Shown here: positions 1 through 42,062 of the stretch, piece by piece
Numbering within the stretch: the stretch's first letter is position 1
Layout of the letters: each line of letters starts with the position of its first letter
Origin: Lepidodermella squamata
Lineage: Eukaryota > Animalia > Gastrotricha
Assembly (NCBI GenBank): GCA_047495785.1
Contig: JBLDXI010000001.1
Coordinates: 1,426,001 to 1,490,000 of the forward strand
Reading direction: 5' to 3'
DNA length: 64,000 bases
Program-made: the position numbers and the translations under genes
The notes under the pieces: model-generated
Seen by the model: only the letters and a program-made list of their open reading frames with translations
Databases searched by the model: none
What the model was told of the DNA's origin: nothing

Positions 1-1538
1 TATCCTTGTATCGAATCACAGTAGAATGTAAGGATAGCCTGCACTTGACATCGGCAACATCAACCACAACAATTACGGTAGGTATTCGATGAATCAAGTT
101 GGCAACTCTAGCGGGAATTTTTATCAAGGTGTCTATAAGCCATGTCAACCAGCCAGCTCAGTTCACCTCCTTACCTGGATATGTAAATGTCCAAGAAGAC
201 GCAACCACTGGTCCTACAGAGCTGTACTCCATCGCGGCTGTTGATCCTAACAATGGCGTTAATCCTGTCACAATGAGCCTCTTGTCAATTTCACCATCCG
301 GTGGTGGGTCCAAGTTTTACTTCGACACTAATACCAAGAGTGAGTTTATTGATTTAAAGTTTACGGGACTTACAATAATTTTTCAACCAGTATTCGGCTA
401 CACCGCAAATCCTCAATTCAGTTTCAATACCCAGTCCAATTACACGGCCTTGTTCTCTGCGTACAATAATGTGAATCCGACGGTGACTGGAACTCTTTAC
501 ATCTCAGTATCGAAGGTCACCCCTGGGGTATCTTGCTGCTACACAGTTTCGATCCGAGAAGATACGAATACCTCTCAAACTCTGTGGGACATGAGAACTC
601 GTAACAGCAGTGCTAACATTGTAGCGTGGGGTCTCGGCACTGTAAGTCCCTCGAGCTCGGCGTTCAGCATAACCACAGCAGGGCGTGAGTTTATTCTAAC
701 TTGAACAGAAATCCAATTTCGTGTCGATTATTTTTCAGTTGTCAAGTCTAGCAGTTATCCCAACTTCAACTATAACACAGCCCCAGTTTACACCGTGTTG
801 ATTACTGCGAGAGATGCCACGACCACTATTGCGACTTACACCCTAACGGTTTCAATCACTCCTGTGACCCAACAGCCTGTTATTTGGAACATGCCTCAAA
901 CAGTGACAATTTTACAAGGCACTGGTGGCGGAGCGAATCTGCTTCAAGTCAATTGCACGGAACCGAGAAGCTCGCTCAGTTACAGTATGAAAGTTCTACC
1001 TAGCTCTGGAACGACAAATTTCCTCATTTCGACTACTGGTCTTGTAACAACGCCATCCTACGCGAATTTCACTTACGTCACCAACCCGATTTATTACGTC
1101 ATAGTCGGATGTTCCAACACGGCTTACACGACTAGCGGAACCCTCACTGTAGTGATCACCACCCCGACTATTACTTACACTGTTACTACGACACCTTCTT
1201 ACGGCCAGACAAGCACAGCCACAGGGAGCAGTGGAAGTAGTACAACAACTTCCAGCAGCTCAGGACTCGCTCCTGAATGTGAGTGGACTAAACCTATAGT
1301 TTATTGCATTGACCCGAAATATTTCCCCAGATATCGGAGCGATAGTTGGCAGTATTGGAGGATGTCTAATTTTAGCAGGAATCGCATATGCTGTTGCGAA
1401 GCACCTTCAAGCCAAGGCAGCTGCTAAAGGAATAACAAGGTACGTATACAGTTGCATCTCGAATGGTTGAAAACAAAATTTATTTGCTTTCATTTCAGTA
1501 TGATGAAACAATACCCGCCGCCATACAGCGTACGGTGA
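1..1538 (+). CDS. Cadherin-repeat-like single-pass membrane protein (5' part outside the window); S/T-rich stalk, TM helix, short tail ending YPPPYSVR*
   Basis: GT-AG introns near 78-129, 340-390, 685-738, 1280-1330 and 1440-1498 join ORFs with cadherin-type repeats (VSISHVNQPAQF..VNVQED, YTVLITARD..LTVSITPVTQQPVI), a T/S stalk, TM IGAIVGSIGGCLILAGIAYAVA, and TGA at 1536-1538. Confidence 0.8.
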
Positions 1539-1684
1539 CCTTCTTTATTTGCGATGGCAGATCTATGACTGAAGCCCCATTTTTGTGTTTACTGGGGAGA
1601 AAAAGTGCAAAATAATTTTTCACACACCCAGTGTAACTTTGTTGCGAGTAAATAAAGATATTTGTTCAACAAAATGAAGATCCT

Positions 1685-3084
1685 TTACTCAATGGCGTAA
1701 GGTGTTGCATATGGATTGGCGCCTGCGTTACCAGCCGGACCATAGTTGCATACCTGAAGAGGAGTTAATAAGATGAATCAGTAATGCTCTAAATCAGTCT
1801 TACTAGAACAATATTTCCATCACCCAGTCCATTGCAGTAACTTTCGCCGCAACTGAAAAAATTATTGCCCGTGAAAAGAGAAACATCTCAACCAAAAAGC
1901 TTACCCTACAAACTTTGTCTCTTGCCAAATCATTTGAGTGTAATGCCCTATGCTGATGTTGGACGTTTTACCGACGCCATACTTCCAGTAGAGGCGTTCA
2001 TCAGCCCAGCCAGTGATGCATTCATTCCAGTTAGTTTTCCCGGCTTCACTTGCGCATAGATTCTGGCCAACGTAAGGCCACGCCGGCCCTTTATCGCCGC
2101 GGTCAGGCAAGTATCGAACAGCAAAGGTGTCATGGTCATCCTTACACTGAGCTGCTAAGCGTTCGGCAGTGGCAGCGAGATCATCGTCCCACTTCAAGTC
2201 TACCAGAGGAACCCTTGCTGGTGGATTGACGGATCCTGTGAAAGTAGTAGTAACATGTAGCAGTTACGATTATAAGGGATCAAAAATCCTCACGACGATA
2301 TTCGTTGTGAATTCTCAGAATTTCTGTCGGGTCACTTATGGTTGAATAAATCACATCTTCCGAGTCATTGAGGCAGAGAGTATGAGGCAAAGTTAGGTTA
2401 TATCGGCACTGCGGCTGCGGAAAAAACGTTTAGTCTTAAACCGTGATAAACTATAGGAAAGCCTACCCCTTTCTTCTCAAATCCAACCAATCCCGCTGGT
2501 ATCGGAGTTTCGGAAGTACTTACCTGCGGCGTGACAAAATTGACAGTCGAGGCTGATGTTACTGACTTGGTAGTTGACGTTGTAGTAGACGATGTCGGTT
2601 TAGAAGTAATTGTTGCTGCTGTCATAGTCGTTGTAGCTGTAGGAGTTGTTAGAGCTGTTGTAGTACTAAAGGTGGCTAGAGGTGTTGTAGTATCACTATT
2701 GCTCGAGCTCGAAAGATGAGACGCAGGGTTTCTTCGCAGGATGAACCGTGCGAATGGATCAGAAGCATTAAAATCTGCCGTTCTCGCATAGCTTTCCGGG
2801 CAAGATGGCAGTGGATCGATCCACTTCTCATTTTCGCACCGAACTGTTGAATTGCCAACAATCAACCCATCAATGCAGGCATAGATCACGGTTGCAGAAC
2901 GGGCTGTTCTGTTCGTCTTGTCGTCTATTGATTTGTTAGACTTCAAAACAAGGGCGGTATAACCGCCGATAAGTTCGGGCGGCCTGTCGCAAACAGACCC
3001 AGTGTCGGCGAGAAGATTCGACCATGAAATTTGCTCAGCTGTCGCAGAACAAGTTGTTATCAAAACGAGCCAGTAAAAACGCAT
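1685..3084 (-). CDS. Secreted Sushi/CCP + Thr-rich linker + CAP (SCP/PR-1/antigen-5) protein
   Basis: Signal peptide MRFYWLVLITTCSATA; Sushi CDRPPELIGG..VIYAC..VRCENEKWIDPLPSC; CAP motifs HNEYR, WDDDLAATAE, VGQNL, GHYTQMIW, VCNYGPAGN; stop TAA at 1687-1685. Confidence 0.85.
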
Positions 3085-3354
3085 TCTGAGAAGAGGGTAT
3101 GATGTTGAACTGATGTAACTTTCTCACTTTGGAACGTTTTTCTTGCCCCATTTTTATTACTATGAATCAGAGCATTTATTGGCAAAAAATGTTCACGTTA
3201 CATTGCACGACACTTACTTAACTATAAACTTAACGCTTTTGACACCTTGTAAATTGACAATGACTAGGCAATACTATAGATGATTGTTGCTTGCTTTAAT
3301 AACTACATGAATACTTGTCTCGTGTTTCATTGAGTTTTCAGTTTTTCAGTCAAG

Positions 3355-5397
3355 TTATGCATTAGCTGTGGCAGCTGCTTCGTAAGGGAAGGCAAATGGA
3401 TCGATTCCAGGTGCTTTGGCGATGTTTCCACCAGGTCCATAGTGACAGGTCTAAAAATAAATGTCTATATATGTGATTCAAGTGGAAATGCTGTCTTCCA
3501 TACCATTACGTCCAGAAGTTTGTCTCCGTCACTGCAGATCGCTCTGCCGCAACCAATTGAGGTAGTCGTCGCCCAAATCATTTGTGAGTAGTGCCCAACC
3601 TTGCGGATATTTTGGTTGGGATGATTCGGATCGATAGCGCCAGTGCCGAATCGGTAATTCTCCTTCTCGGCGGCCCAATACCCGACGGCTGCTGGCACCG
3701 AAGGAAACTCGCCGCCGATGTTCAGCGCCATGTTTTGATTGACGTACTTGAACTCGGACTTGCCGTCTCTCGCCGGTAGACTCAAGTCGTCGAGGTAGTG
3801 TTGGTCCGAACACTGATAAGCAGCCACTCGCTCGGCGGCAATCGCTAGATCCTCGTCCCAGGTGACATCTGGTATCGGAACTTTCGCAGGTGGGTTAACA
3901 GATTCTGAAAAAGTAATCATCATTTTAATCAGGGCGCTTAGGGAAGGATAGGAAAACTTGCTTCTCTCTTTGTTGTGGGCATCTAGGATATCTTGAATTG
4001 GGATCGGAACGGTTCGGTTGAGTTTAGGCGAATCAGCCAAGCATAACGCATTCGGTAGCTTCAGTCCATACCTGCATTGAGGCTATAAGAATGAAGTGTT
4101 ATCAAGCGTGAAAATCAATTGAGGTGGATTCATACCCCTCTTAGTCCTCCTGACAATATCTTTACGGTAATGTTTCCCGGCAGCATAGTCGTGGGGCCGG
4201 CTGTTGTAACAGCTATAGGTCCAGGTCTAGCTGTTGTTATCGTTACTGATACAGGTCTAGCTGTTGTTGTCACTGCATTAGAAACAGCTGATGAACCTGC
4301 CGCAGTTGTTGGTAGGGTGATAGCGCTTGCTGGCAGGGCTGTTATTGAAATCACCCGGGTAGTTCCACCTGAGATTGTTGTTAATGAAATCGCCCTGGTA
4401 GACGGAGCAAGGGTAACTGCAGTCACGTTAGACGGCCGAGATGTCGTAATTAGAGGCGGAGTTTGAACAGAAATCGGCTTCATGGTCGCTGGTCCAGCTG
4501 TAGCACCTGGTGCAATGAAGACGGGGGAAACTTTACCAGGATCAGCGTCGTAGGGTTTCGCAAAATGGTTCATGCCATTGAAGCCAATATTTCCACCAGG
4601 TGCGTAGTCGCAAACCTTCGAAAATACTTAGGGCATATGATTAATCTTGCGAAAGAAAATTTACCATCATATATTCCCATTCGCCCTTGCAACTAGCCTT
4701 GGCACAACTATAAAAAAATATTTATTAAGGTGGATTTGAATTTTGTTTAATATTATACCCTATGCGAGTCGTGTTTTGCCAGATGATTTGTGTGTAATGG
4801 CCAACATCGCTTCCGTTTATAGAACCAACGCCGTACTTGAAAAAGGCTTTTGAAGCGGCCCAGGCATTGACGCATTCAGCCCAGGTGGGTTCATAGCCGG
4901 AGCTGAAACATTGATTCTGGCCTACCCATTCGTAAGATGGAAGCACTCGCTGTTCCGCAGGTTCGTGTTCATCGTTGCATTGAGCTGCCCAGCGAGCTGC
5001 CATTACAGCTAAATCATCATCCCAAACCAAATTTGGCAACGGGGTCCTCGAGTCAGTTATTTGCGCTGTTGAAAATGACGAAAATTTAAAGATTTCGATG
5101 CAATAATTCTAGACATTTTTAGACCTCGGAATCCGTTGTGTAAGGTTAGGACTTCATCGGACTTGGTCTCTTCAGCCTTGACAAAATCAGGCGAGTTGTC
5201 GAGACATAGCGTATGATCTTTCGGATACTTGAACTGTTCGCACAGCTTTGCCTATTCGTATAAACAAAAATGTTTGCTATTCAACTCATTTTAGGGAAGG
5301 GGTGTTTTTATATTACAGCAGCTGGATCGCTGGACTGTGCCTGGATCAAGTTGAAAAACACGGCTGGCAAAATAGCAATTAGAATTCGAGTTATCAT
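3355..5397 (-). CDS. Secreted double-CAP protein (CAP - Thr/Pro-rich linker - CAP)
   Basis: Signal peptide MITRILIAILPAVFFNLIQA from ATG 5397; CAP-A HNGFR/WDDDLA/GQNQC/GHYTQIIW/CDYAPGGN; mucin-like linker 4130-4560; CAP-B HNKER/WDEDLA/GHYSQMIW/CHYGPGGN; stop at 3357-3355. Confidence 0.85.
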
Positions 5398-6604
5398 TTT
5401 GCGGTGAAATTATGCGAGCTATGATTTTTCAATTTTTCAAGACAACATGTTGAATTGCACCGAGCGTTAATGTGTTTTTTGTCGGCAAATGTCTGTTCGT
5501 TTGTGCTGTTTGTTCAATCATTAGGCGGTAAAAATCTCGCAAAAATAGCTATTTTGTATGAGCAATGCAAATAAAAAACACGATGTCGCAAATTTTGATC
5601 GTCATTTTTTTAGCGATCACGCCTCAGGCAAAAAATGCAGGTCCCAACATTGCCCCTGAAAAAAATTGCTTGGTAAACGATTGAAAAATGCGATGCACCT
5701 AATATTAGGTTTAAAAACTGTATGTCTTTCACCACGATCACATTTGCCCGTGCGGAACCAAATTCAACCGCAAGAAATTTCAAAAATTGACCCCAAAGAT
5801 TTCAGGAGTATATGGACAATTTTTTTTGTCGGCTTCTCAAGTTATACTCAGATGATATAAGGAAGAAATAATAAATTGATCAATAATCAATCATTAAACT
5901 TCAGACTATATTATGAAAAGTCAGTATCGACCTTGCTGTAAATTTTAACAATTCGGCTTCAAGGCAACAAGCCATCTCAGTTCCGCCACTATTGGGGACT
6001 CTTGCAGAATTAACAAAGTATAGCGACATGATAGCTGATATCGAAGGAATTATTAATATGGGCTTGCTTTCTAAACGATTTCAAGTTTAAACATATATTC
6101 AACGGCATCTTTCAGATTTCAAATCATTTTCATCCACTTTTGCTCTATATTGTCCACGGGCCGAGTTTAAATCAGGCCGGCCGGGACGGGTATAGTCCAC
6201 ACAAGGATGAGGTCGGCCGAAACTCATTGTTAGTCTACAAAACAAAATGCTGAAAAAACTATATTGCCACAATATATGTGTTTTTATCTGATGATAATGA
6301 TTTTGGCAGTAAAATAATAATAATGTTTTGATTTTTCCTCTTCGGGACTATGAATGTTGTTTACCGGTTCCGGTTTTGAAGAGGTCGAAGGCAGGCGACG
6401 AATCTTCCTCAACCAGTCTTCCTCACAGTGGAAGATTCTGCTTTTTTGTATAAATTTCATAATTTTAATCGAGCTGACAACCACACGCCATTAATCTATT
6501 TCAAATGAAACCAATTCCACTAGTTTGACATAGAGAATAATTTCTATCTCAAAATCGTTTTCGCAGGGATTTTTTCTTTTTCCATCTATTCTTACTTCTC
6601 AGTA

Positions 6605-6782
6605 CAGTAAAACCTCCATAAATTAGATGTCTATAAATTAGACACCTCCGTGATTAGACACTTTTTATCGGCGACGAACCGCAAGGACAACTATTGTTCG
6701 GACTTTCTGTATCTTAGACAGCTCCATTATTAGACGGTTTTAGGCCACTACGGAAGGTGTCTAAATTGTGGAGATTTTACTG
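6605..6782. mobile_element. Short MITE, Tc1/mariner-pogo type
   Basis: TA|CAGTAAAACCTCCA ... TGGAGATTTTACTG|TA (TIR with 1 mismatch, TA TSD); internal TTAGAC repeats. Confidence 0.75.
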
Positions 6783-6806
6783 TATTCTTATTTATCCTTC
6801 ACCATA

Positions 6807-8030: not shown

Positions 8031-8087
8031 GTGGCGCAATCGATTCGATTGCAGGCGTTGGTGGTCAAAGTCACTGGTTCGATTCCC
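8031..8087 (+). repeat. tRNA-derived Pol III-promoter-like cassette, copy 1
   Basis: A-box-like TGGCGCAATCG, B-box GGTTCGATTCC, downstream T-run; identical 57 bp at 8294-8350; no full cloverleaf found. Confidence 0.6.
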
Positions 8088-8293
8088 CGTCACTACTGAT
8101 TTTTTTAATGAGCTTTTAGTTTTTTTTTACTTTCCTTAAATTTTACTGGCACATGGCAATACTGCCGGTACCCGAAACTGGCTGTTTGTGAAAAAAACGG
8201 CCAATGCCGGCAGTGATGCCTACTGCCAATACGGCAAAATATAAAAAATCCACTTTAAATCGGTTTTTTGTGATTGATTTTCATAGCGAACCA

Positions 8294-8350
8294 GTGGCGC
8301 AATCGATTCGATTGCAGGCGTTGGTGGTCAAAGTCACTGGTTCGATTCCC
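8294..8350 (+). repeat. tRNA-derived Pol III-promoter-like cassette, copy 2
   Basis: Exact 57-bp copy of 8031-8087, followed by GATTTTT. Confidence 0.6.
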
Positions 8351-12096: not shown

Positions 12097-12378
12097 ATGG
12101 CCGCTTTGACTGAAAAAGAAGTGAACGATCTTTTTGTCGAATGCGACTCGAACAAGGACAAGCTTCTTGATCTGGACGAATTCGCCATTTTGGTGAGCAA
12201 AATCGAAAAAGGCGCCCACCGCTCGCGTGAAGATCTTGAAAAACTGTTCGTCGCTGTCGACACCAACAGTAAGATTATTATGAGATGACCTGAATTTGTA
12301 TTTTTACCTGCATTTTTCGTTACAGAAAACGGCCGGATTTGCATTGGAGAACTTCAAGCTCATTTCTGCAAGAAATAA
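12097..12378 (+). CDS. Small two-EF-hand Ca2+-binding protein (~74 aa)
   Basis: EF loops DSNKDKLLDLDE and DTNKNGRICIGE, the second completed across a GTAAGA..TTACAG intron (~12269-12326); stop at 12376-12378. Confidence 0.85.
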
Positions 12379-13218: not shown

Positions 13219-13619
13219 ATGGTAATTTTTCGCAAATTTTCAGAAATATCTGAAATTAATTGCTTTGTTTTTTAATTACGCAGCGCACCTTAACTGAAGA
13301 AGGTAAATATTTCAAAATTAAACAGTCTCTAATTCACTAAATTTTTCTAAATTGCAGAAGTCGCCAACCTTTTCTCGAAATGCGATGCCAACAGCGACAA
13401 GGAGTTGGATATCAACGAATTCGCTGAATTCATGAAGGAGGTCGGCGCTGCTGATATGCCGCGCGCTGACGTCGAGGCTTTCTTTCACGAGGTCGATAAA
13501 AACAGTAAGGAATTATTGACCTGAAAAATATGGCGCATTGCTAAAGCTCATTATTTTTGTTAGGTGATGGCCGAATCCAGCTTAAAGAGCTGAAAGATGC
13601 CGTTGCCAATCGCCACTAA
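13219..13619 (+). CDS. Small two-EF-hand Ca2+-binding protein, paralog (absent from ORF track)
   Basis: Exons 13219-13221 (ATG only), 13284-13302, 13358-13504, 13564-13619 give MRTLTEEEVANLFSKCDANSDKELDINEF...DKNSDGRIQLKELKDAVANRH*; last intron at the same position as in the 12097 gene. Confidence 0.8.
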
Positions 13620-13720
13620 ACCATCGGAGTCGACGGGACAAGGACATTACTTTCATGTTAACAAATCATAATACTGAATGATGACTAGTATAATAGGCTC
13701 CAAAATTAAGGTTTATCATC

Positions 13721-15023
13721 GTTAGCCCAAAATAATTATCAGAAAACACTGCCGTGAATTTGAATTGTATTATTGTGACCTTTATATAATCAATCCGCAG
13801 GGACATCACGTATTAGGATAGAATCGAATAAAGTTAAATATAGGAACGTAATTTCAGCCGCTGCTTGGCGGGAGCCCCTTCGGAGGCTTTGTAGTTGAAG
13901 TTGGCTTTCTTGTTGTTGTTGTTGACGATTTGCTGTCTGAAAAATGAGTTTAAATTTAATTAAGACGTCGACAGATTTGCTGAGCTTACACGGCAGATTT
14001 CTGACGACATCGACGCCGTCATCAGTGGTATCAGTAACAGACGGTAATCCGGTGAATTCGTCCCCGTTAGTGGTCGGATTCTCGGTCGTTTGCCGTCCCA
14101 CTGGCATGCGGCCTCCATTTCCTCCGGGAGATCCGTTATTGCGTCCTGCTGGGAACCCCGGGAAACCTCCAGGGAACCCTTCAGTTGACCCGTTGCGACC
14201 ACGCATTGGTGGCCAGGGGAAGCCTCCGGATGAGTCGTCTCCTGTCCTGTTTCTACCCATTGGCGGCCAGGAGAAGCCACCGGGAAAGCCATCCCCAGTT
14301 CTGTTTCCACTAAGCGGCGGAACCAGGATGAATGCCGGGAAACTGCCATTACCAACCGGCCAATTTACCGCAGTTCCGTTTCCACTAAGCGGCGGAACCA
14401 GGATGAATGACGGGATACTGCCATTAACAAAGGACCCATTTACGAAAGGCGGGAAGCGACTCCGACCACCATCACGATCTCCGTTGCCACGGCGGCCCCC
14501 TCCTGATGGTGAATTCTCATTGTCATCGCCACCATCATCCCCATTGTCACTTTTCCGACCAACTCGATCTCCCCAAGGGAAACCACCTCCACTGTTTCTT
14601 TGCGGCGGCGGGAATGGACGAGCACCATCTTGGTCGTCATCCCAGCCATCATCAACCGGTTCGTCGTCATCAACATCTCGTTTGTTACCACCGCCTTGCC
14701 CACCGCCACCCCATCGCTGGCCTGTAAAAAGGGCTGGTTAAGAATACGAATGAATAAATCATTTCCCAATTCTAACCAGATACGACAGCAATGCCGAACA
14801 AAATAATAGCCGATGTCAGCCTCATTTCTCAAGTTTCAGGATTATAGAGTAGATCACTTCATAAAAATCTCCCTCGCTTATAAGGCGTTTATAAGGCAAG
14901 AATTGTCTTGTTAGCCTCATTGCAGCGTGCTGTTTACCGCGAATTACTTCCATCACTGCTCAGCCAAGTTCTGTCGTACGTGTTGTCAAAAACGTGAAAA
15001 AGTAATTGGAACGGTGAATAAGA
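13721..15023. repeat. Tandem segmental duplication unit A (partner 17798-19377)
   Basis: Shared 3' flank (GAAAACACTGCCGTGAATTTGAAT), coding sequence, introns and promoter (ACTGCTCAGCCAAGTTCTGTC, GGAACGGTGAATAAGAA) with the second copy. Confidence 0.9.
13854..14825 (-). CDS. Secreted low-complexity Gly/Pro/Phe/Asp-rich disordered protein A
   Basis: MRLTSAIILFGIAVVSG|QRWGGGGQGGGNKRDVDDDEPVDDGWDDD...FPWPPMRG..GFPGGFP...|YSKSSTTTTRKPTSTTKPPKGLPPSSG*; two GT-AG introns; TATA-like TATAA about 50 nt upstream. Confidence 0.8.
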
Positions 15024-17494: not shown

Positions 17495-17927
17495 TTACAA
17501 GGGGGTGGGCAGTGCGTTCGATGAGCCAGGAGAAAAATATTTTTCTATCATACGTATTTTATGAATTTCAGCCGCAATCGCGTCGAATAACTTAGCACAG
17601 ATTCAACAAGTGATAATTGGTGCGTACTTTTTCTCCGCACACCTTGCACTCCTTAATCGCGCTTGCGATTGCCGGCGTCCCATATCGCTCAGAGCCGCCG
17701 TAAGCCGCCGAAACACGCCTGGATAAGTAAACAACGGGTGGATACACGCTGTAAGTGGTATTGAGCGTTGAATGCTCTTATAGCACAGCGTTTAAATGTT
17801 AGCCTAATAACTATCCGAAAACACTGCCGTGAATTTGAATCATTTTGACCTTTATTTATTCAATCTGCAGGAACATAACATTTTACGATAGAAGTGAATG
17901 AAGTTAAATATAGGAACGTATTTATTT

Positions 17928-19134
17928 TCAGCCGCTGCTTGGCGGGGGCCCCTTTGGAGGCCTTGTAGTTGAAGTTGGCTTTCTTGTTGTTGTTGAAGTT
18001 TTGCTGTCTGAAAAATAAGTTTAAAATTTAATTAAGACGTCGACAGATTTGCTGAGCTTACTCGGCAGATTTCTGACGACATCGACGCCGTCATCAGTGG
18101 TATCAGTAACAGGCGGTAATCCGGTGAATTCGTCCCCGTTAGCGGTCGGATCTTCGGTCGTTTGCCGACCCCGACCGCCTGGCCTACCGCCCCCGTTTCC
18201 TCCGGGAAACCCGCTAGGAAAGCCATCCCAACCAGACCCGTTGTTACGTCCTCCTGGGAACCTCGGAAAACCTCCAGGGAAACCACCAGTTGACCCGTTG
18301 AATCCTGATGGTGGCCAGGGAAAGCCAGTGTTTCCAGTGTTTCCACGCATTGGTGGAGGAAAACCTCCAGGGAACCCACCAGTTGACCCGTTGAAGCCGG
18401 ATGGTGGCCAGGGAAAGCCAGTGTTTCCAGTGTTCCCGCGCATTGGTGGCCGCGGGAACCCCCCGGATGAGTTATTTCCATCCATTGGCGGCCAGGTGAA
18501 GCCACCAGGAAAACCATCGCCAGTGTTTCCACCAGGCGGGAATGCCGGGAAACTACCATTACCACCAGGGAAATTTCCGAAAGGCGGGAAAGGTGGGAAG
18601 CGACCTCGACCGCCATCACGGCCTCCGTTCCCACGGCGGCCCCCTCCTGAAGGTGAATTCCCATTGTCACCATAACCAGAATCACCGTTGCCTCCATTCC
18701 AATCACCAGTATCCCCTCTCCTTCGCCCAGATGGTCGCCCAGTGTCGCCGTTATCACCCCCGTTATCATCATCGCCACCATCATCCCCATTGTCACCGTT
18801 CCAGTTACCTCGGCCTCCGCCTTGACCTCCCCAAGGGAAGCCGCCTCCACCGTTTCTTCGCGGCGGCGGTGGCGGAAACGGGAATGGAGGGCCATCTTGG
18901 TCATCATCCGAGCCATCATCGACCGGTGCGTCGTCATCAGCACCTCGTCTGTTACCTCCGCCTTGCCCTCCGCCTTGCCCTCCGCCTTGTCCTCCGCCTT
19001 GCCCTCTGCCACCCCATCGTTGGCCTGTAAAAATGGTTGGTTAAGAATACGAATGAATACCGCATTTCCTAATTCTAACCAGATACGACAGCAATGCCGA
19101 ACACTGTCAAAATAATAGCCGATGTCAGCCTCAT
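17928..19134 (-). CDS. Secreted low-complexity Gly/Pro/Phe/Asp-rich disordered protein B (paralog of A)
   Basis: MRLTSAIILTVFGIAVVSG|QRWGGRG(QGGG)4NRRGADDD..., internal duplication of PPMRGNTGNTGFPWPPSGFNGSTGGFPGGFP, ends NSKTSTTTRKPTSTTRPPKGPPPSSG*; same two introns as A. Confidence 0.8.
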
Positions 19135-19401
19135 TTCTCAAGTTTCAGGATTACGGAGGAGATTACTTCATCAAAATCTCCCTCGTTTATAAGGCTTTGA
19201 GCTTTGGATATACGTGACTTAGCGGCAAGAATTTTCTTGTTAGCCCAATCATCAATAGAATGTTATAGCGTGATGTTTGCCGCAAATTACTTCTACCACT
19301 GCTCAGCCAAGTTCTGTCATACGTGTTGTAAAAAAAATGATGAAATGTGAAAAACGAGTTGGAACGGTGAATAAGAATAAATTTTATCAGGCTATATATG
19401 T

Positions 19402-20428
19402 CTATAATGCCATCTGGATAACGGAAATAGTGATAACAATAACGCTAGCGAGATTCATTGATGATCCGGACGAACAACCATCGTCGGAACTTATTTGTCG
19501 ATTGTTCATGGGTTTCGCCCTCTGCTTTGGCGGGGCGGGAGTGGCTGCAGCAGTGGTTGTTGGAGGATCCGTCCGCGGCACCCTCGGACCATTATTGCCA
19601 CCTCCATCCATGTTGTCTCCAGGTCTGAACCCTCCATTTTGGCCGCCATTCTGTCCACCATTGGGTCCCATTCCACCATTGGGCCCCATTCCACCCATTC
19701 CACCCATTCCACCCATTCCACCCTGACCTCCACCCTGACCTCCACCCTGACCTCCACCCTGACCTCCACCCGGGCCTCCTTGGCCTGGTGGTCTGTTGGG
19801 CATATCCCACTCAGAGGCCTCCTCGTCTGTCAACGTAACACCGCAAACTTGAGCGCAGGCTTTGATCGTTTGGAAATTGTTTCCTTCACTGGGAGGACGG
19901 CAGCCGACGAAAGCTTGACACTTTTTAGCCGTATCGCTGTAAAAGAATCGTATCTTCACCTTGTCCAGTTCACCTGGACAGATGTCTTCGCGCAATCGGA
20001 AGCTGCGACGGCACACTAATGAAATAAAAGTAAAGGATATCAAGTTCTGTCAATTTAAACGAACCAGCTGCATTTGGCAGGGTGTCGTTTGTTGTCTCGG
20101 GGCTTGTGATGGACATCATGATTGTCGCGAGACCGCCATGGCCCATTCCAGGCGGACCCATGCCACCCTGCCCTCCCCCCATTCCCATCATACCTCCTGA
20201 CCCACCCCCGAATCCTCCCTGGCCTCCTTGTCCACGGCCGCCTTGCCCGCCACCTTGACCTCCTCCAGGACCTCCCCCTCCGCCAAAACCACCGAATCCC
20301 CCGAACAATCCCCCGAAACCACCCCCACCACCACCACCACCACCACCACCGCCGCCGCCGCCGCCGCCGCCTTGTTGTGCTGCTGCGAATCGCACGATAG
20401 CGAGAGCTAAAGCCACTTTTTGCCACAT
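19402..20428 (-). CDS. Secreted poly-Gly protein with divergent Kunitz/BPTI domain and hydrophobic C-terminus (possible GPI anchor)
   Basis: Signal MWQKVALALAIVRFAAA; poly-G and GGQG/GGM repeats; 49-nt intron 20016-20064; six-Cys domain C..C..RFFY..KKCQAFVGC..GNNFQTIKACAQVC; tail SSGSSMNLASVIVITISVIQMAL. Confidence 0.82.
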
Positions 20429-20674
20429 TTCTACTAAGTGTTAGAAAAACTCTTACTGAGAGATGACATACATTTTCCTGACGCTTGTTTCGTGACCTCG
20501 TGGTTGTAAAAAATTGAGAAGGGAAACAAAGGGTAGCATTGTTTATTCTGGTTTTTGGCTGCCATGGCTATGCACAGTTAGAGAGCTAACTTTTTTTTCA
20601 TGTAGTTCTGTTTTTCCTATGGGTCATGTAGGCGTGAAGGTGCTGGAAGTAAAATAATTGGAAGAGGCTCGATT

Positions 20675-21439
20675 TTAATTGTTTTTAATGCCATGATTGA
20701 TTGCACGATTGCCACTAGGCCCTGCAAACACATTGCCACTGAACTGGCCTAGACGCTGCTGCTGGGTATTGCCACTATTACTGCCAGCATGGTTGCTCCC
20801 GTGGTTGCCCATTCCCATGCCGCTATGGTAGCTGCCCCATTGCGAGAACATGTCACTCCAATACCCCGTGACATTAACGTTGCAAACTCGGCCGCATGCT
20901 TCAAGGCTGACAAAGTTGTTTCCAGGAGAATTCGGCTTGCAGCCAAAAAACATCTTGCACTTCTTGGTATTCGCCCGATCATAAAAGAAACGGCTCCTTG
21001 TCTTGTTCAGCTCACCAACACAGACGTCCTCAAGTCGAACATCAGTTGCGCAAACAGCTTTGTCAGGATCGGTCTCATTTTCGCTGCGTCCCCACATTCC
21101 AAAGCCCATTCCTTGGTAAAAAGAAATAGCTGATGAAAGTGATGAGCTTCTTATTCGGGAAAACTTACCCATCATTCCACCTTTCCCCCCACCCCAATTC
21201 CCCCAGTTTCCCCGATCTCCCCACATATTGGTGCCATTACCGTTATTGCCGAAGTTACCGAAATTGTTTCCCCAGGAGCGCCCGCCGTTTCTCCAGTCAC
21301 CTCCCCCAAAATTTCCCCAGGGGTTGTTGCCCGGATTGCCATTGCTGCCCTGATTACCGTTATTATTGTTATTTTGGGCAACAGAACTATTCGCGAGGTA
21401 CAAAACAGCTAATGCGAATAAGGTAACTTTGAATACCAT
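20675..21439 (-). CDS. Secreted Gly/Asn/Trp-rich protein with divergent Kunitz/BPTI domain
   Basis: Signal MVFKVTLFALAVLYLANSSVA; WGN/GN repeats; 57-nt stop-free intron GTAAGT..CCAAG (~21112-21168); RFFYDRANTKKCKMFFGC..GNNFVSLEACGRVC; 3' end slightly uncertain. Confidence 0.8.
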   Translation of the reverse strand: MVFKVTLFALAVLYLANSSVAQNNNNNGNQGSNGNPGNNPWGNFGGGDWRNGGRSWGNNFGNFGNNGNGTNMWGDRGNWGNWGGGKGGMMGKFSRIRSSSLSSAISFYQGMGFGMWGRSENETDPDKAVCATDVRLEDVCVGELNKTRSRFFYDRANTKKCKMFFGCKPNSPGNNFVSLEACGRVCNVNVTGYWSDMFSQWGSYHSGMGMGNHGSNHAGSNSGNTQQQRLGQFSGNVFAGPSGNRAINHGIKNN

Positions 21440-22554
21440 GTTACTTCTCGTGCTATTTGTCTTGGAAAAATGCAGACAGACGAACTGATAAAGGTACATG
21501 TTTCTCGAGGTGACATCAGCCTCTTGCTTGGTTCCTTAATGGGCATGCGAGGGTTGAAGATCACTTCGCTGACGTCGCAGTAATTGCACTGCTAATGAGG
21601 TAAAAGCCTCAGACAAAAAAAGCCCACGCAAGACGTTCAGCAAAACCTCGTTTTACTTTCATTATCATGTCTCGATAATTGTTCGAAAAGTCCAGTAATT
21701 CATCTCATAAGAATAGAAATTTCACAAACTTGAAATGATGCTATTTACAAAAGTTGTTAATAAATAACTGTAAAATCAACCAGATTTAAATTCAGAAGAG
21801 TAATTCGAAGACATAAATATGACAATAATGCAATCGATTATTTTATAGTTCATTTGTAAAATAGATGCACATAATTATATCGAGAGATAAACACATAATT
21901 TTGCTAGAATCGTTTCCTGTACAGTTAGTCATTCGATTTGGCGTTCCTTGATTCACGGATGTCGTCGACCTCGACTGAAGCTTGCGTATTTCCCCGCATA
22001 GTCTCATTTTTCCTTGCGCATCGAGGATTCGTTCCTTCCCGATTGTTTCATGTATAAGCCCACAACCGCGACCAAAACAAAGATTAAACAGTCATCGATT
22101 ATATAGAAAATGTACAGTATTTACAGACCGGCAATATGAAAGGTCAACATTTATCTCAATGATAAGACAAGATATTTCAGTGTTTCAGTTGATCTGCATG
22201 CAGCGGCGGTATTATTCGCGGATCAGTTTCAATGGTGCTTGTAATTTTTTGTCTCTAATTCGGCACGTTTGCGTATAATAGGATTATAGCTTGACAACAG
22301 ACAACAGATCAAGCAAAGAAAGCGATGAATTCTACTGAGTCATAACGTGGCTTGCTCGCTTGACAATGCCGATCAAGCGAAGCTCATCGCACTCAGCACC
22401 GGGTCAACATCTAAAATCGTTCTCCGATGAGTTATTTATCCGTGTTTTTGGTTAGTTCCACAGAATGAGAAAAGATCTAGTAGTGGCTCAAACGGAAAGT
22501 GAAATGTAAGGACACAATTGAGATTCGTATATAGGTATCAGTTATATTTACAGC

Positions 22555-25500: not shown

Positions 25501-26186
25501 CTTACTGTAGTCCATGCCTGAACCGATGAAAACGACAAGAACTACAGCGAAGAGAATAGTGACACTCTCAAGCCATTCCAAATGATGGCCGCAGCCACTA
25601 GTACTCGTCGATGTTGTCACATTAGGTGCAATTGTGGAATACAAAGGACTGCCACTAGCAACTGGCCCTGCTTTTGTTACATTCTGGGATGATGCATCAT
25701 CGTCGTCCTCGGCGGGGAATTGAATAAAGGAGATGCCGAGGGAGACGACGGCTGCAACTGTTAGAATAATCAGCAGTGGATCTTGAATGGCGTCGAGGAC
25801 GAATCTCCAAAATGGTTTCGATTTCTTAGGAGGGATAGAGTTGACGCCGAAAACTCGCCGCCGTTTTTCAAGCTCTTCATGCCCCTCAGAAAGACCCTGA
25901 AATGGAATCAACTTAGGAATCGGTACTTGCGAGTAAAGTAAATTATTACCGATTCGACGTTAGATTTGACTAAACTGGCAAGGTTATTTATGTTCTGGTA
26001 CCGATTTTGGAGCTCTGTTTGGGCTTCGTGGCCACGGAACTCCATGAGCGTGCGAAGTTCGCGAAGTGTTGTGCCGTAGTACTTGGCCTCCGCCGGGTCG
26101 ACAGCAGTGTTGATGACCACATCTTTGCCTTTGCTTTTTCCACTCTGCTGGCGTCCGGAACTTGAGTTCGACCCATTGGCAATCAT
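22555..26186 (-). CDS. PMCA: Plasma-membrane-type Ca2+-transporting P2B ATPase, paralog 1
   Basis: [63 protein letters not shown]; single coding intron 25897-25949. Confidence 0.95.
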
Positions 26187-31746: not shown

Positions 31747-32905
31747 TAGCTAATATGTACTATTCCTAACTGAAATCACGCGCAGCAAGAACTGTCGCAC
31801 TTGATCGACCTAAATCATCGGAATTTATCGTCTGGGACCGATATAAGCAAATTAATCCCTGCGAATGGTACCGCAGGGGATCCAATAAAAAATGATTACA
31901 GAATTGTTAACCTAAATAGACCTTATTGATATACAAAAAATAGAAAATATATGAACAGTTCTGATTATTTTGAAGTTCTGCGACTATAAATTGTGAAACA
32001 ACTCGAATCCAGGTAGAGCGTTATTATTTCGTTTTTTCCGCGTAATTAGGACTGCGAAGGGGATAAAAAGTGAGCTTACGAGCTCAATTCAATCGATAAA
32101 GACACCGCGCAAATACCAAAAGACTAGATTAAAGTCTTAAAAGACTAGATTAGATACAATATTTCTTTGAACGTGGGAATTCTTTTTAATAATTAGGTGA
32201 ATCACCTTCTTTACGAGAACAAGTGACATAAAAAAGCTATAGTACTGCATTGTTCTCAAATTTTACACCTGCAATCATGATTCAAGACTTCAGCTGCTGG
32301 ACACATGCTGACCTTAATTACTCGAATCCTCCTAATTAGCTGTCATGATTGCCGCGGATCGATTATGTGCTTGCATGCAGGTTATTGAGGATAGTATCCG
32401 CGAGGATTTGCTAAATGAATTTCGGATTGCATTTGGGACGGTCCAACACTGACCGTTGATCGCTATGACTAGTGCAGACTTCGAAGCACCTGCGTGATTG
32501 GAGCTTATTAAGACGCAGGGATCAATTAGCTGGATGATGATTGATGATTATGTCGGCTTGGAATTCGAGGTTAAATCAGATATTTTGGCTTTCTTGTTCA
32601 ACCTGAATTATCAAACTCTCAATTTTCATACACAGGTCTTCACGGTCTTCGAAGATAAAGCCACGGTGTTCGAAGTATGACAGAATTTGAAGAAAATATA
32701 CGCCTTACACCCCCTCACTTGTCGATGAAAGAAAGTATGAAGAACGCGTGGGACCATTGAAGAAGTGATGAATGAACCATCCCTATGCAACGCATTCTAA
32801 AAAGTATCAACGCACATCTTCTGCACTCCCGTCAATTGAAAAAAACGTTAAAATAATATGTGTACTATCATCACAACTGAAAACATAGTATAGCTAATCT
32901 GAAAA

Positions 32906-34721
32906 ATGAAGCGGAAAGACTTTGTCGCATTCCTCCGCATCCTCATACTCCATGTTTCCCTAAGCTCAGTCCGAGGTAGGTCCCCCAGCTCTGAGTCAAG
33001 TAGCTTGGTAACTAGATTTCAACAGGTGCCCAGCCGTCATTTTTAAATTTGGTTAATGGCACGAATACGTCTCCAGTTCGAGATGACGCTACGGTTTCAG
33101 CCAACATCTACACCGTACAGTGCACTGATCTTACTGCAGGCCTGCCTGTCAACTTCGTCATGGGAACTGTTCAGCCTTACAACCCAGTCTTTCAAATCAC
33201 TCCATTCTCAGGCGTGGTGTCTTACAACGTTTTGTTAGCCCAAGGCACCCCAATGTTTGACTACAATACCGCGCAGAATTACTATCTAACAATCATCTGC
33301 CAACAGTCGGGATTTTCAGTGTCTGGAACACTCACAATTCCTATTCAACAAATCTACAAAGCTCCGGTTTGGTATCAACCAGTGCTTACTTACAATACTG
33401 TCCCGGAAAACACCCTACTACCTTTGGTTGTTTTTACTAACTCAGCGTATGACGCGCAGGGCTTGAGCATCACGTACTCAGCCGATAGTGTTGGGACTTA
33501 CAAGAACGCAAATTTCCGAACTGACAATGCCGGTCGCGTCTATTTGATTCCTAATACCAACTTAAACGCGAGCTGGACCTCTGTGTACTACGTCAACGAG
33601 CTTGCTTATAATATCTACAAGACCAGCACGATTTCGCTGACAGTCAGTGTTGTCGGGGTTAACCACGCGCCTCGCTTCGTGAATTTGCCGACTTTAGCTC
33701 AGGTCAGCGAGCAAACAACTACGGCGACTCAGTTTTTCAAGCTTAACTGGCAAGATGAGGATGATCCATTCCTAACGGGAACCTACGGCTTCACCTTCAC
33801 CTCGAATCTATCTAGTGGCACTACAAAGTTTTCGATTGACAGTGTTGGAAGTAAGTTAAGAATATTGTTCAAAAGATAAGAAATTTATAGCATATTTGCT
33901 TTAAGATGTATGGACCCTACCCCAGCCGGCGTTTGACCCTTCAGTAAGTTTCCTGGTATAAGGTAGAATTTTATAGATGGATTGTTCAATTTTCAGTTTG
34001 AGCCTACTTTTGTCATGACAATTTATCTGACCGATGCGGGTAGTCCCCAGTTAACAACAACTGGGACCTTGACTATCAATATTGTACCCCAATCTACAAC
34101 TAAGCCGACGTCTACAACGGCGGCGGCTAATGCGGTAACGTCTACGTCTACAGCGACCACCACTTTAAATCAGGCCATCGATACAAATACGCGTAAGTTA
34201 AATGATAAAATCCTTACCTATAAATTCAGGTTGCTGCAGTAGTTGAAGTTTTGCAGTTAAGAATTTAAAGTTACAGCAGAATAGCTATTTTTTAGCCTTT
34301 CGCAGTGTGAAAAGCTTTGTAAAATAAGCGGTGTTAAAATCGATAGATTTACCTAGCAACGACGCTTGTAGTTAGGAAGTCAAGAAATGAGTATTATAAA
34401 TGCATCCAAGTGCGGATAAAAACAATCGTATGCGTTTCAGTTATTGGCATTGTTTGCGGCACTATCGGAGGCGTCCTCCTTATAGGCGGCATTATAGGCA
34501 TTTCTGTTTGGTGCATGCAATCCACTTCGAGGCAGGGCGGCCTAATTTATCAGACAGGCCCAATGATGGGCAACAACAACGTTGGACCGACTTATCAAGG
34601 CGATCCACGGCAAGTGGTCGTCCAAGGATTGAATAAGCAATTGGTAAGCAGTGAAAAAATGACCAAGAAAAATCACATCACTTCTATTTAACAGGCTCCC
34701 CCACCTCCTTATCGGCCTTGA
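32906..34721 (+). CDS. Cadherin-repeat-like single-pass membrane protein (~3 repeats), tail ending APPPPYRP*
   Basis: Signal exon 32906-32975; exons 33026-33850, 33906-33943, 33997-34192, 34441-34643, 34695-34721; motifs FDYNTAQNYYLTIIC, VPEN, VNHAPRF, DEDD, TDAGSP; TM IGIVCGTIGGVLLIGGIIGISVWCM. Confidence 0.83.
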
Positions 34722-35583: not shown

Positions 35584-35874
35584 CCACACCGCATGGGCAC
35601 ACAGTAGTTCAGCGGATAGCTGCTGTCTGCTGTGCATTGAGCGTCAAGATCGATAGGCACGAGTTCGATCCACACCCAGGTCAGCCGTGATCTATCAATG
35701 ACGTTCCATCGTGTTACAAAAGTGAAAAGTGGTAGATTAGGAGTGTCAGCGAAACTGCACTAATCGCTACCTAGCTGTCCCATTCAGGAGACCCAGCAAG
35801 CGACCCCTAAGAGCGCTCATTCGGGACCCATGGCCTCGGCCCATCAAGGAATTTTCGATTTTCGATTTTTTTTT
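35584..35874 (+). mobile_element. tRNA-derived SINE
   Basis: A box TAGTTCAGCGG (35605), B box GAGTTCGATCC (35661), TTTTCGA-repeat/T tail, TSD-like TTTTCGATTTTT on both sides. Confidence 0.6.
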
Positions 35875-35883
35875 CCTTTTTAT

Positions 35884-36087
35884 TGAAAACGCGAGTGCGT
35901 AAACCGTTTTCCCTTATTATCGTAGGTATGTTGACGTTTTGTTTCGTCTAAAACTATAAAAAGGCAACAATATACGAAGTAGTAAGATTCTTAATGTTTT
36001 AATGTCTGAAGTTCTGACGAAGTCGAAACGCCACAACTTACGAAAATAAAGGAAAACGGACAAAAGTTTTACGCACTCGTGTTTTCA
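35884..36087. repeat. Imperfect long inverted repeat (MITE-like hairpin)
   Basis: TGAAAACGCGAGTGCGTAAA..CCGTTTTCC versus GGAAAACGG..TTTACGCACTCGTGTTTTCA. Confidence 0.6.
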
Positions 36088-38360: not shown

Positions 38361-41300
38361 ATGAGCGCAACGTAAGTTTAACTTACTTTCCCCGCCAAAC
38401 TCGTCAATTTTTCAATGTATCTCAGGAACAACATCGACGCCTCGGCAGAAGCGGGGGGCTATGGCGTTACGGTCAGAGACCTCCGCGGTTTGATGGAGTT
38501 CCGAGGCCATGAAGCGCTTACAGAACTTCAAAGCCGCTTCCAAAGTGTTTTTAACCTTGCATCGTTACTGAAAACCAACCCTGAAACGGTAATTTAAAAG
38601 GTTACTTGCTCACTTTATTCATGCCTTGTATATAGGGCATCAGAGAATCTACCGAGGAAATCGAAAAGCGGAGAAGAGTGTTCGGCCCAAATTCAATTCC
38701 GCCGAAGAAAAATAAGCCGTTTTGGAGATTTGTTTGGGATGCAATTCAAGACCCCCTCCTCATCATTTTGACAGTCTCGGCTGCAGTGTCTCTCGGCATA
38801 TCCTTCATTCCGATGCCAAAGGATGAAGAAGAAGATGATGTAGTAACTACTACGCTGTCGCCTATTGTCGGAATAGGATGGAATGCTACAACTACAATGA
38901 TTAATCGAAATTTAACAACAACGCTAGCCGTACATCATGGCTGTGAGCACAGTTTGGAATGGATTGAAAGTCTGTCCATTCTGTTTGCGGTCGGCTTGGT
39001 GGTTTTCATCGGCTCTGGTATGGACTACAGTAAGGAACAAGAATTCCGCAAACTTCAATCGAAAATCAACTCAGCCCATATGGCTAATACTATGCGAAAT
39101 GGCGAGGTCACAACAATTCCAGTCGCTGAGTTGGTCGTTGGCGATGTTTGCCTGGTAAAATACGGAGATCTGCTGCCGGCGGATGGTATCATTATCAATT
39201 CCAGTGATTTACGCACGGATGAATCATCTCTAACTGGAGAATCTGATCAGGTCGCTAAATCCGCTAGTACTGATCCTTTCCTGCTATCTGGAACGCATGT
39301 TGTCGAAGGGAGTGGGCGAATGCTTGTTACTGCAGTTGGCGTCAACTCTCAGGCCGGAATAATTTTTGTCCTATTAGGACAAAGCGATGGCAACAATGAA
39401 AACAACAAAAGCGAGGCCAAACCTGCCGACGCATCTGGTTCGGCGGAGGAAGGTAAAGTGGAGGACGAAGCGAAGCAGCAAGAAGCTTCAAAACACCGCT
39501 CGATCCTTCAAGAAAAGTTGACAAATCTCGCGAAACTTATCGGCCAGATCGGCCTGGGTTTCGGCATTGGAACAGCCGTTATTTTAATCATCCGATTTCT
39601 CGCTGAAAGAATTCCGAAAAGCGGCTGGCATAACTCGTATTGGCTGTACATCGTCAAGTACATCATTGTCGGTATCACCGTTCTAGTCATCGCCATCCCA
39701 GAGGGTCTCCCCCTAGCAGTAACACTCGCTCTGGCTTTTTCAGTGCGAAAAATGTTGGCGGATAACAACATGGTCCGCCACATCGATTCGACCGAGACGA
39801 TGGGCAGTGCTACTACAATCTGTTCAGATAAAACAGGAACCCTAACCACAAACAGAATGACCTGTGTTCGCAGCTTACTTGGTGGGAATCTATACGAACA
39901 CGGCTCTGGCAACGAACAGCAAGATCGGCAACATGTCAGAGTTGTCAATGATCACCCTGAGAAATCGAAATTCAGCAGCAAATTTGTCGAGCTTTTGTCT
40001 GAAGCAATTGCAGTGAATACAGGCTACACGTCAATGGTCGAAGCTCCGTCTACTCCTACCGGTCTTCCTATTCAAAAGGGCAACAAGACTGAGTGCGCCC
40101 TTCTGTACTACCTCATGCGTTTCGGCATCAAGCCGGAGGATGTTAGATCAAAAAATCCTGAATCAAGTTTTCATAAACTCTTCACATTCAACTCGGCTCG
40201 AAAATTCATGGCCACGTGTTTGAAAAAACCGAACGGACATATCCATTTCTATGTGAAAGGAGCGTCTGAGCGTTTATTGGCTCGATGCTCTAAATACCTT
40301 GATGATGAAGGAAATGTTCATGAAATTCCAGAAGAGTTGAGGCATGACATGGATTCGATCATCGAAGAAATGGCTGGAGATGGGCTAAGAACACTCGTCG
40401 TTGCATATCGTGAACATGAGAGCGACCCAAACTGGGATGAAGAGGAAGCTCTCCTAAGTGAACTTACGCTTCTGGCGATTTGTGGTATCGAAGACCCGGT
40501 TCGTCCTGAAGTGCCCGATGCTATAAGGCTATGTCGCTTGGCTGGCATCACCGTGCGAATGGTTACAGGTGACAACATCAACACAGCTAGATCAATAGCG
40601 CAGAAGTGCGGCATTCTAACGCCGGGAGATCGCCAGGCTTTGGTTATAGAAGGCCGTCAATTTAACGAAATGGTCCTGGATAGTGAAGGCAATGTTAACC
40701 AGGCCCGTTTCGACAAGGTCTGGCCTAATCTTAGAGTCTTGGCGCGATCTAGCCCGACCGACAAATACACCCTGGTAAATGGAATCATTCAAAGCAGAGC
40801 TGGCAAGCAACGCGAAGTCGTAGCTGTAACAGGTTTGCATTAAGTTCTGTTTGTTTAATTTTTAGATCCACCCTAATTCTACAGGTGACGGCACAAATGA
40901 TGCTCCCGCCTTGAAGCGAGCTGATGTTGGATTTGCCATGGGTATCGCCGGTACTGACGTGGCGAAGGAGGCTTGCGATATCATCATCACCGACGACAAT
41001 TTCTCTAGTATCGTCAAGGCTGTAATGTGGGGCCGCAATGTTTACGACAGCGTTTGCAAGTTCATCCAGTTCCAGCTCACCGTCAATGTCGTCGCTGTCC
41101 TGTTGGCTTTCCTCGGGGCCATTTTCATTAAACAAAGCCCACTTAAGGCTATCCAACTGCTTTGGGTCAACCTTATCATGGACACCCTGGCGTCACTTTC
41201 CTTGGCAACCGATGCGCCGACTGAACAGCTGCTGAAGCGTCCACCTCAACGTAGATCAAACCCTGTTATCTCGCTGACAATGTGGCGTTTCATCCTTGGC

Positions 41301-42062
41301 GAATCTTTATACCAGCTTGGCGTATCGTTCATGTTCGTTTTTGCCGGACCCCAGTTTTTCCCGTACGACTCGGCGAAGCAGTGCCCTGAAAAGCGACTCC
41401 AGGACGAAAACGGCCGCTGTTTATCGCCCGTGGATTCTCGAATGCGAGTCTCGGACTACGAATGTCCGAACGTGAATTTCACGATTGTTTTCAACGCGTT
41501 CGTTCTAATGACCCTTGTCAACCAAATAAACGCCAGGAGTCTCCACGGTGAACGGAATGTTTTCCGTGGTCTGCATAAAAACGTTGTCTTCATTGTCGTT
41601 TGGCTGCTCGAAATTAGTCTTCATATTATTATTATCGAACTGGCTGGACCTGTTTTCGTCACGGTGCCTTTAACGTGGGCGCAGTGGCTTATATGCACCC
41701 TAGCTGGGCTTGGTCAGTTTGTTTGGTACCAATTAGTGGTATTCGTGCCTTTTGAGCAATGGATGCAAAAGCTTCTCGCCCGCTTCGGCAAGGGCGGAAA
41801 CGCTGAGGAGCCAGATGTGCGAACTCAAACAGCTTCGGTCACATCGCTCCGGCTGCGTCATCACGAGCATATCAACAAGGACGTTCAAGATAACTACGCA
41901 GTCGCTTCTATTGTCCACCGAAAAATCGCAAGTGTGCGTCAAGCAACGCCGCCGTCGTTGTCGCGCCACGAACACAACGCTACGGCTAACAGCAACGTCC
42001 AGGTCACCGGGCATCATAATCCATCGTTCGAAAACGAAGACGTGGCAACTACTCGCTTATAG
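38361..42062 (+). CDS. PMCA: Plasma-membrane-type Ca2+-transporting P2B ATPase, paralog 2
   Basis: Exons 38361-38371, 38426-38588, 38636-40832, 40885-42062; all catalytic motifs present (TGES, PEGL, DKTGT, KGASE, TG|DGTND); ends ATTRL*. Confidence 0.95.

Follow-up and report, generated by a model that had tools for sequence, protein, structure and literature searches.

A secretory-gene neighbourhood in Lepidodermella squamata and the apparent pairing of six gene families at its right-hand flank

Does a run of twelve genes for secreted, cell-surface and Ca2+-handling proteins, in which six families each occur twice, constitute a single Ca2+-driven system, or is it the partial view that a window gives of something larger? 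The question arises at positions 1 to 42062 of a 64,000-nt stretch of Lepidodermella squamata DNA (C1:1426001-1490000; hereafter the window, to which all coordinates without a contig label refer), part of an assembly of 121 Mb in 151 contigs. An earlier note had proposed one module, in which pumps, Ca2+ sensors, disordered structural proteins, protease guards and membrane anchors serve a single secretion. Here, we report that the physical linkage of genes for exported and surface proteins is borne out and that the single Ca2+-driven module is unsupported. The block is probably the right-hand flank of a large, lineage-specific secretory-gene neighbourhood, which would have grown via repeated local duplication; the position of its pump, EF-hand and cadherin-like genes would then be a matter of coincidence and local duplication.

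Extent and growth of the secretory neighbourhood

The host genome is that of an animal, compact and intron-poor (introns of 54 to 67 nt), and its top protein matches, none above 51% identity and none below 45%, are scattered among brachiopods, flatworms, molluscs and vertebrates. Two genes each of the CAP, EF-hand, GPF, Kunitz-like, PMCA and cadherin-like families were confirmed in 1-42062 (Table 1), with Pfam gathering scores as cut-offs (CAP, 21.1 bits; Kunitz, 21; EF-hand_7, 30; Cadherin, 28.8; PF12424, 22.9). Judged by Pfam matches, signal peptides and transmembrane (TM) segments, the claim that all twelve are secreted, surface or Ca2+-handling is mostly right, the cadherin calls being its weak part. 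A codon-usage scan of the gaps at 5-12, 15-17.8, 26.3-32.4 and 34.7-38.6 kb returned no further coding open reading frame (ORF), in agreement with the claim that no housekeeping gene interrupts the block; the abrupt onset of a housekeeping block was likewise seen, with MSH6, a protein kinase, MRPL3 and PARP2 from 42.6 kb rightward.

The pairing holds inside 1-42062 and dissolves at the level of the locus, which has about 20 CAP domains and a third PMCA 21 kb upstream, and in which the two cadherin-like genes (cadA and cadB) are no more than distantly related. Leftward, the neighbourhood would extend at least 70 kb beyond the window. CAP-domain places were found with tblastn at about 20 points between -57 kb and +5 kb, and a profile search of C1 gave 14 CAP matches at 1373197-1431045; the window's CAP genes would thus be the last members of an array of about 20 domains. 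The ORFs upstream of the window mix Sushi modules, Kunitz-like Cys modules, Gln/Asn/Gly-rich tracts and CAP domains, and genes for a sulfotransferase, a rhodopsin-type G-protein-coupled receptor, a ZIP-like transporter and a CUB protein occur in the wider surroundings. The Sushi module of CAP gene 1 resembles the upstream copies, and Kunitz-like Cys domains recur in the upstream Sushi/CAP genes.

Both window genes belong to CAP/SCP (PF00188) on gathering score and on C-terminal CNYxPxGN-type motifs (CNYGPAGN and CDYAPGGN). ORF 1904-2197 of CAP gene 1 scored 44.6 bits, and the ORFs of CAP gene 2 scored 59.1 and 69.3 bits. From gaps of about 50 nt between ORFs on one strand, CAP gene 2 is probably a single gene with two CAP domains, and its linker carries the CDYAPGGN motif and a Ser/Thr-rich stretch. 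A polypyrimidine-AG acceptor-like sequence (3085-3100, minus strand) abuts the start codon of CAP gene 1, and no exon is visible upstream of it.

Table 1. Genes of the six families in positions 1 to 42062 of the window
Gene	Coordinates	Strand	Features
cadA	1..1460 (3' part; gene start ~2.4 kb left of window)	+	At least 6 divergent repeats, Ser/Thr-rich stalk, TM segment
CAP gene 1	1690..3084	-	Signal peptide, Sushi-like Cys module, Thr/Ser-rich linker, CAP, terminal exon with CNYGPxGN motif
CAP gene 2	3468..5440	-	Signal peptide near 5.4 kb; CAP 4728-5039; linker 4133-4627; second CAP 3468-4082
EF1	12097..12378	+	74 aa, two EF-hand loops; exons 12097-12268 and 12326-12378; one 57-nt intron
EF2	13219..13619	+	74 aa, four exons, two canonical loops; EF1 paralogue
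GPF1	13765..14890	-	Signal-peptide exon (ATG 14825), ~54-nt intron, long low-complexity exon; TATA box at -57
GPF2	17835..19200	-	Tandem duplicate of GPF1 with extra 93-nt repeats; transcribed, spliced
KunA	19402..20428	-	Signal peptide, poly-Gly exon, Kunitz-like domain, Gly-rich tail, hydrophobic C-terminus
KunB	20675..21442	-	Signal peptide, Asn/Gly-rich region, Kunitz-like domain
PMCA-A	21640..26246	-	N-terminal exon 25911-26246 (ATG 26186), 1118-codon exon 22558-25911, ~0.9-kb 3' untranslated region
cadB	32498..34691	+	Short divergent cadherin-repeat protein, Ser/Thr stalk, TM segment 34410-34520; 5' exons not defined
PMCA-B	38636..42062	+	Inverted paralogue of PMCA-A; one ~67-nt intron near 40.85 kb

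Each pair would represent a separate duplication event of its own divergence (44 to 80% protein identity; 38 to 47% for KunA/KunB). The adjacent EF1 and EF2 are 44% identical in protein (tblastn), and the neighbours KunA and KunB 38 to 47%. PMCA-A and PMCA-B, joined by inverted repeats I1 to I7, are 73% identical in amino acids overall, 80% in conserved columns and 72 to 77% in DNA. GPF1 and GPF2 form a tandem unit with a spacing of 4.07 to 4.34 kb, direct repeats D1 to D11 and segments of 61 to 95% DNA identity. The appearance of two of each family arises because such separate local duplications combine with the chance position of the window start, and the locus clearly illustrates that local duplication, seen through a window with arbitrary edges, can mimic "two of everything."

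GPF1 and GPF2 encode secreted, acidic, Gly/Pro/Asp/Phe-rich proteins (signal peptide; isoelectric point [pI], 4.5; G, 23 to 32%; P, 12 to 14%; D, 10 to 11%; no Cys), and only these two copies were found genome-wide. A word-indexed search of 5.8 billion sequences (0.55 to 1.75 times the query length) returned no homologue of GPF1, nor did the Atlas. By these searches GPF is an orphan: a family of acidic disordered proteins that are secreted and have no detected homologue. The 54-nt GT..AG intron of GPF2 (18008-18061) is skipped by contigs of one RNA-like run. Since the TATA box 57 nt 5' of the ATG is conserved between GPF1 and GPF2, each gene has its own promoter. The DNA coding for the C-terminal end (13949-14099 versus 18021-18171, 151 nt) is 95% identical, compared with 61 to 87% in the repeat region, which suggests gene conversion or strong constraint at that end. 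Contigs of DNA run X2 have joints that omit 62 to 197 nt within the GPF2 repeats (18171-18994), reflecting either haplotype variation in repeat length or GPF1 contigs cross-mapped at the 90% threshold.

KunA and KunB passed PF00014 with 27.6 bits (profile 13-52) and 25.5 bits (profile 10-52), respectively. Both are basic (KunA, pI 10.0 for the Gly-rich N-terminal exon and 8.5 for the Kunitz/C-terminal exon; KunB, pI 9.6). Profile coverage and translations show that the canonical reactive-site loop and Cys14 (of the Cys14-Cys38 disulfide) are absent from both; Cys is missing from the loop position, and a further one occurs about 10 residues upstream. Serine-protease inhibition by KunA and KunB is therefore unproven, and the role of protease guard given to them earlier is not established. 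The hydrophobic C-terminal stretch of KunA (19405-19470, minus strand) follows small residues in the manner of a glycosylphosphatidylinositol-anchor signal; KunB has no such tail.

The CAP, Kunitz-like and GPF proteins would most likely be components of an extracellular secretion or coat, a role that we infer from signal peptides, low-complexity composition and TATA promoters.

Pumps, EF-hand proteins and cadherin-like proteins

Animal PMCAs (P-type IIB) include high-basal-activity isoforms that serve bulk Ca2+ export, and a C-terminal calmodulin-binding autoinhibitory domain (PF12424) is typical of them. Like these, PMCA-A and PMCA-B carry the complete P-type IIB domain set (PF00690, PF00122, PF13246, PF00702 and PF00689), and their top outside matches are named PMCAs with 48 to 51% identity over 92% of the query. 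Unlike these, neither tail matched PF12424 at E values up to 1, and the two have a different C-terminal motif in common, ASVTSLRxRHxEH... (22558-22800 in PMCA-A and 41850-42059 in PMCA-B). Of the two further copies, one lies at C1:1401910-1405327 (the upstream copy) and the other on C54. The latter is canonical and retains the calmodulin-binding motif (PF12424, 28.4 bits); a RGQILWIRGLNRLQ-type motif at L005:4049-4264 of this paralogue scores as PF12424.

Over 297 conserved columns, the C54 copy is 75 to 78% identical to the PMCAs of other animals, PMCA-A and PMCA-B are 65 to 69% identical, and the upstream copy is 63 to 65% identical; on the same columns, the upstream copy is 59% identical to both PMCA-A and PMCA-B. 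PMCA-A and PMCA-B stand on a long branch in the tree, the deep nodes of which have support of 31 to 70%, so the tree supports no order of events and no judgement on whether the three C1 copies are monophyletic. By these comparisons, the three C1 copies are fast-evolving, lineage-specific pump paralogues that are probably specialised. With two of them tail-less and a conserved canonical copy for comparison, these pumps lend themselves to a test of specialisation. None of the other block families was found in the 20 kb flanking the C54 locus on each side.

EF1 and EF2 scored 32.5 and 33.3 bits against EF-hand_7, and each 74-aa product has two loops, the second of which is canonical (DxNxNG...E and DxNxDG...E). 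Their hand-spliced translations contain no signal peptide.

The cadherin-like pair is the least secure. With 18.3 bits, cadB stays below the PF00028 gathering score of 28.8, and cadA matched no Pfam family. Nevertheless, cadB is a cadherin homologue, because its relatives are true multi-cadherin proteins: an exhaustive library search gave 99 homologues, the four multi-repeat ones scanned carry 8 to 11 Pfam Cadherin stretches each, and P0241, its 61% relative, passes Pfam Cadherin with 31.8 bits. Matches of cadB in PDB to cadherin-23 and other cadherins were weak or borderline. The cadherin status of cadA is weak: BLASTP aligned it with cadB at 27% identity over 135 aa (E, 5e-6), its one tie to that protein, and identity was no higher than among the internal repeats of cadA itself. 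In cadA, a short intron precedes the TM segment (near 1290-1360), which is read in a shifted frame. The cadherin-like repeats retain DxD-like and PEN-like motifs in part; the linker motif DxNDNxP is absent at the junctions (VNRINSPP, ARNNRAPT, VGVNHAPR and SHVNQPAQ), where the Asp residues are not kept. The role of Ca2+-dependent anchor is accordingly not established for these proteins. Searches outside the genome returned no close relative for PMCA (about 50% identity at best), one 58% metagenome protein for PARP2 and, for cadB, a 61% relative on a 3.3-kb metagenome contig without the neighbours.

One mechanism or separate duplications

Kunitz and CAP genes are abundant in this genome and form dense arrays on C15, C29, C25, C2, C17, C13, C66 and C46; of 352 Kunitz candidates, at least 149 matched, and CAP matches numbered at least 63. 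About 70 distinct CAP/Kunitz loci were scored, which places about 3 to 6% of the genome within 25 kb of one (hand count). EF-hand profiles gave 96 matches at about 60 loci, about two of which (C17:577.6k and C17:665k) are within 25 kb of a Kunitz match. EF-hand genes thus stand near Kunitz/CAP genes at roughly the chance rate, and such adjacency arises elsewhere too. At C17:577571-586402, a gap of 2.4 kb separates an EF-hand gene from a Kunitz array (580-586k), an independent case.

After duplicates were collapsed, the block comprised about 7 independent units. If secreted, membrane and Ca2+-related genes make up about 30% of those in an animal (a value assumed and not measured), a run of seven has a chance of about 2e-4 per position. 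One such run is unsurprising because about 2000 to 2900 positions were examined and secretory genes cluster. Once duplication and the number of windows are considered, the clustering is not clearly above the genome background.

In two RNA-like public runs (whole-animal contig data), GPF2, the KunA 3' exon, KunB and PMCA-A (21601-23800, including the 0.9-kb 3' untranslated region) were present, together with 24 to 31% of the words from 12-15 kb. This coverage demonstrates transcription, not co-expression. An absence of EF1, EF2 and GPF1 from these runs was considered and rejected, given the words present from 12-15 kb. For the promoters (300 nt upstream, five families), no 9- or 10-mer was common to three or more families in what is a low-power test. 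The 8-mers common across families were A-rich, most of them also occurred in two control promoters, and their number was within the shuffled range.

Taken as one system, the block would serve a single secretory cell type: tail-less PMCAs would export Ca2+, the 74-aa EF-hand proteins would sense or buffer it, GPF and Kunitz-like proteins would build a glue, coat or mineral matrix that depends on Ca2+, and CAP and cadherin-like proteins would modify or anchor it. We consider this unlikely, although several observations favour it and weigh against duplication and coincidence. An unbroken run of seven units, all secreted, surface or Ca2+-related and with no other coding ORF between them, is not what a single window usually shows. 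One 95-kb secretory region contains three of the four close PMCA paralogues; these regional copies are divergent, and the loss of the calmodulin-binding tail from PMCA-A and PMCA-B, with its retention on C54, fits cell-type-specialised pumps. The Asp-rich acidic GPF proteins (pI 4.5) adjoin the basic Gly/Asn-rich Kunitz-like proteins (pI 8.5 to 10), as would suit a charge-driven, Ca2+-sensitive material. PMCA-A, KunB, KunA and GPF2 follow one another on one strand with spacers of about 150 to 270 nt and are all transcribed, as is part of 12-15 kb, an arrangement compatible with a common cell type. The chance estimates, moreover, are hand counts of CAP, Kunitz and EF-hand profile matches combined with the assumed category frequency, not an annotation-based permutation. 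What argues against one system is that promoter words are not common across families, that EF-hand genes are not associated with Kunitz/CAP loci genome-wide, that the C54 PMCA locus lacks these families, that the cadherin-like linkers lack DxNDNxP and the Kunitz reactive loop and Cys14 are unmatched, that duplication and the window edge account for the pairs, and that the secretory-cluster theme was picked post hoc from about 2000 windows. A specific version, which we regard as doubtful, is that divergent PMCAs were recruited to the cell making GPF and Kunitz-like proteins and that pumped Ca2+ causes a lineage-specific extracellular material to assemble by charge, through coacervation, hardening or mineral nucleation, with the genes kept in one chromatin neighbourhood. 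Were the module real, it would be a rare animal case in which the pump, sensor and structural proteins of one secretion are genomically linked, and a source of new material-forming proteins.

Two further explanations concern how the genes are transcribed and how the sequence was assembled. PMCA-A, KunB and KunA, possibly with GPF2, might be cut by spliced-leader trans-splicing from one minus-strand precursor, which would link the Ca2+ pump to secreted proteins. Their co-orientation and short spacers would suit such an operon, as would the acceptor-like sequence directly 5' of the CAP gene 1 ATG, but we judge it improbable: RNA-like contigs bridge none of the spacers (coverage is zero at 19001-19400, 20001-20400 and 21401-21600 and near none at 20401-20600), the TATA box conserved between GPF1 and GPF2 speaks for a promoter of their own, and a leader sequence was not seen at PMCA-A, KunB, KunA or GPF2. 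An assembly artefact, in which the pairs would be haplotypes left uncollapsed or copies joined in error, is scarcely credible. Haplotigs seem to exist in this assembly, as suggested by the contig pairs C25/C26 and C28/C33 with identical-scoring Kunitz and CAP matches, but the paired genes here, at 38 to 80% protein and 61 to 95% DNA identity, are too divergent for alleles, and a haplotig origin was rejected on that divergence. In addition, no 200-nt bin of the 6 kb examined lacks coverage in DNA run X2, in which 91 to 92% of sampled words are present. Under repeated local duplication, the reading that we prefer, the presence of PMCA, EF-hand and cadherin-like genes beside secretory genes would most simply reflect coincidence and local duplication, with no joint Ca2+-driven mechanism.

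Known systems and neighbouring features

The nearest genomic parallel is the vertebrate secretory calcium-binding phosphoprotein (SCPP) genes, a single family that descends from SPARC-like genes and has a common exon structure. Like the SCPP cluster, the present locus links genes whose products are secreted, acidic, disordered and lineage-specific, shows local duplication and probably serves an extracellular material; unlike it, the locus combines pump and EF-hand genes with three or more secreted families that are unrelated to one another. Mollusc shell-matrix proteomes contain Asp-rich, Kunitz-like and EF-hand proteins, and we know of no shell-matrix genes arranged as a pump-plus-matrix cluster. 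The domain vocabulary and the Asp/Gly-rich low complexity are the same here; GPF differs in having no detectable homologue. Sandcastle-worm-type cement combines oppositely charged proteins with Ca2+/Mg2+. Its likeness to the acidic (pI 4.5) and basic (pI 8.5 to 10) low-complexity secreted proteins encoded adjacently here is one of charge alone; no phosphoserine-rich or 3,4-dihydroxyphenylalanine (DOPA)-type composition was seen. In tick attachment cement and saliva, glycine-rich proteins occur alongside Kunitz-type proteins in a hardening secretion (PMC5947171; saliva proteomes, PMC7041860 and PMC3998978). Gly-rich low-complexity secreted proteins co-occur with the Kunitz fold in both settings; in ticks, however, they are separate proteins, defined by proteomics and not a shown genomic module, whereas at our locus a single polypeptide carries both a Gly/Asn-rich region and a Kunitz-like domain with a non-canonical loop, and the host, by its best protein matches, is not an arthropod.

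Elsewhere in the assembly, Kunitz and CAP matches recur in the same order and with identical or near-identical scores on paired contigs (for example at C25:2037815 and C26:303660 and at C28:1719734 and C33:321550), which suggests that haplotigs were retained or that segments were duplicated very recently. Rfam and ARAGORN identified no RNA gene in the window. Two 74-nt direct repeats (8031-8104 and 8294-8367; 92% identical), which end in a tRNA-like GGTTCGATTCC box, received no call from either program and may be a tRNA-derived short interspersed element. On the strand opposite MSH6, a MULE/ZSWIM-type transposase fragment (44249-45126, plus strand) lies between two large MSH6 coding blocks, with a further weak, sub-cut-off match to an Ulp1-type peptidase; it looks like a transposon remnant within an MSH6 intron. 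Two pairs of long inverted repeats (30816-31007/31557-31748, 192 nt, 96% identical; 58507-58654/60281-60428, 148 nt, 100% identical) flank 0.5 to 1.6 kb in stretches otherwise free of genes and look like elements bounded by terminal inverted repeats.

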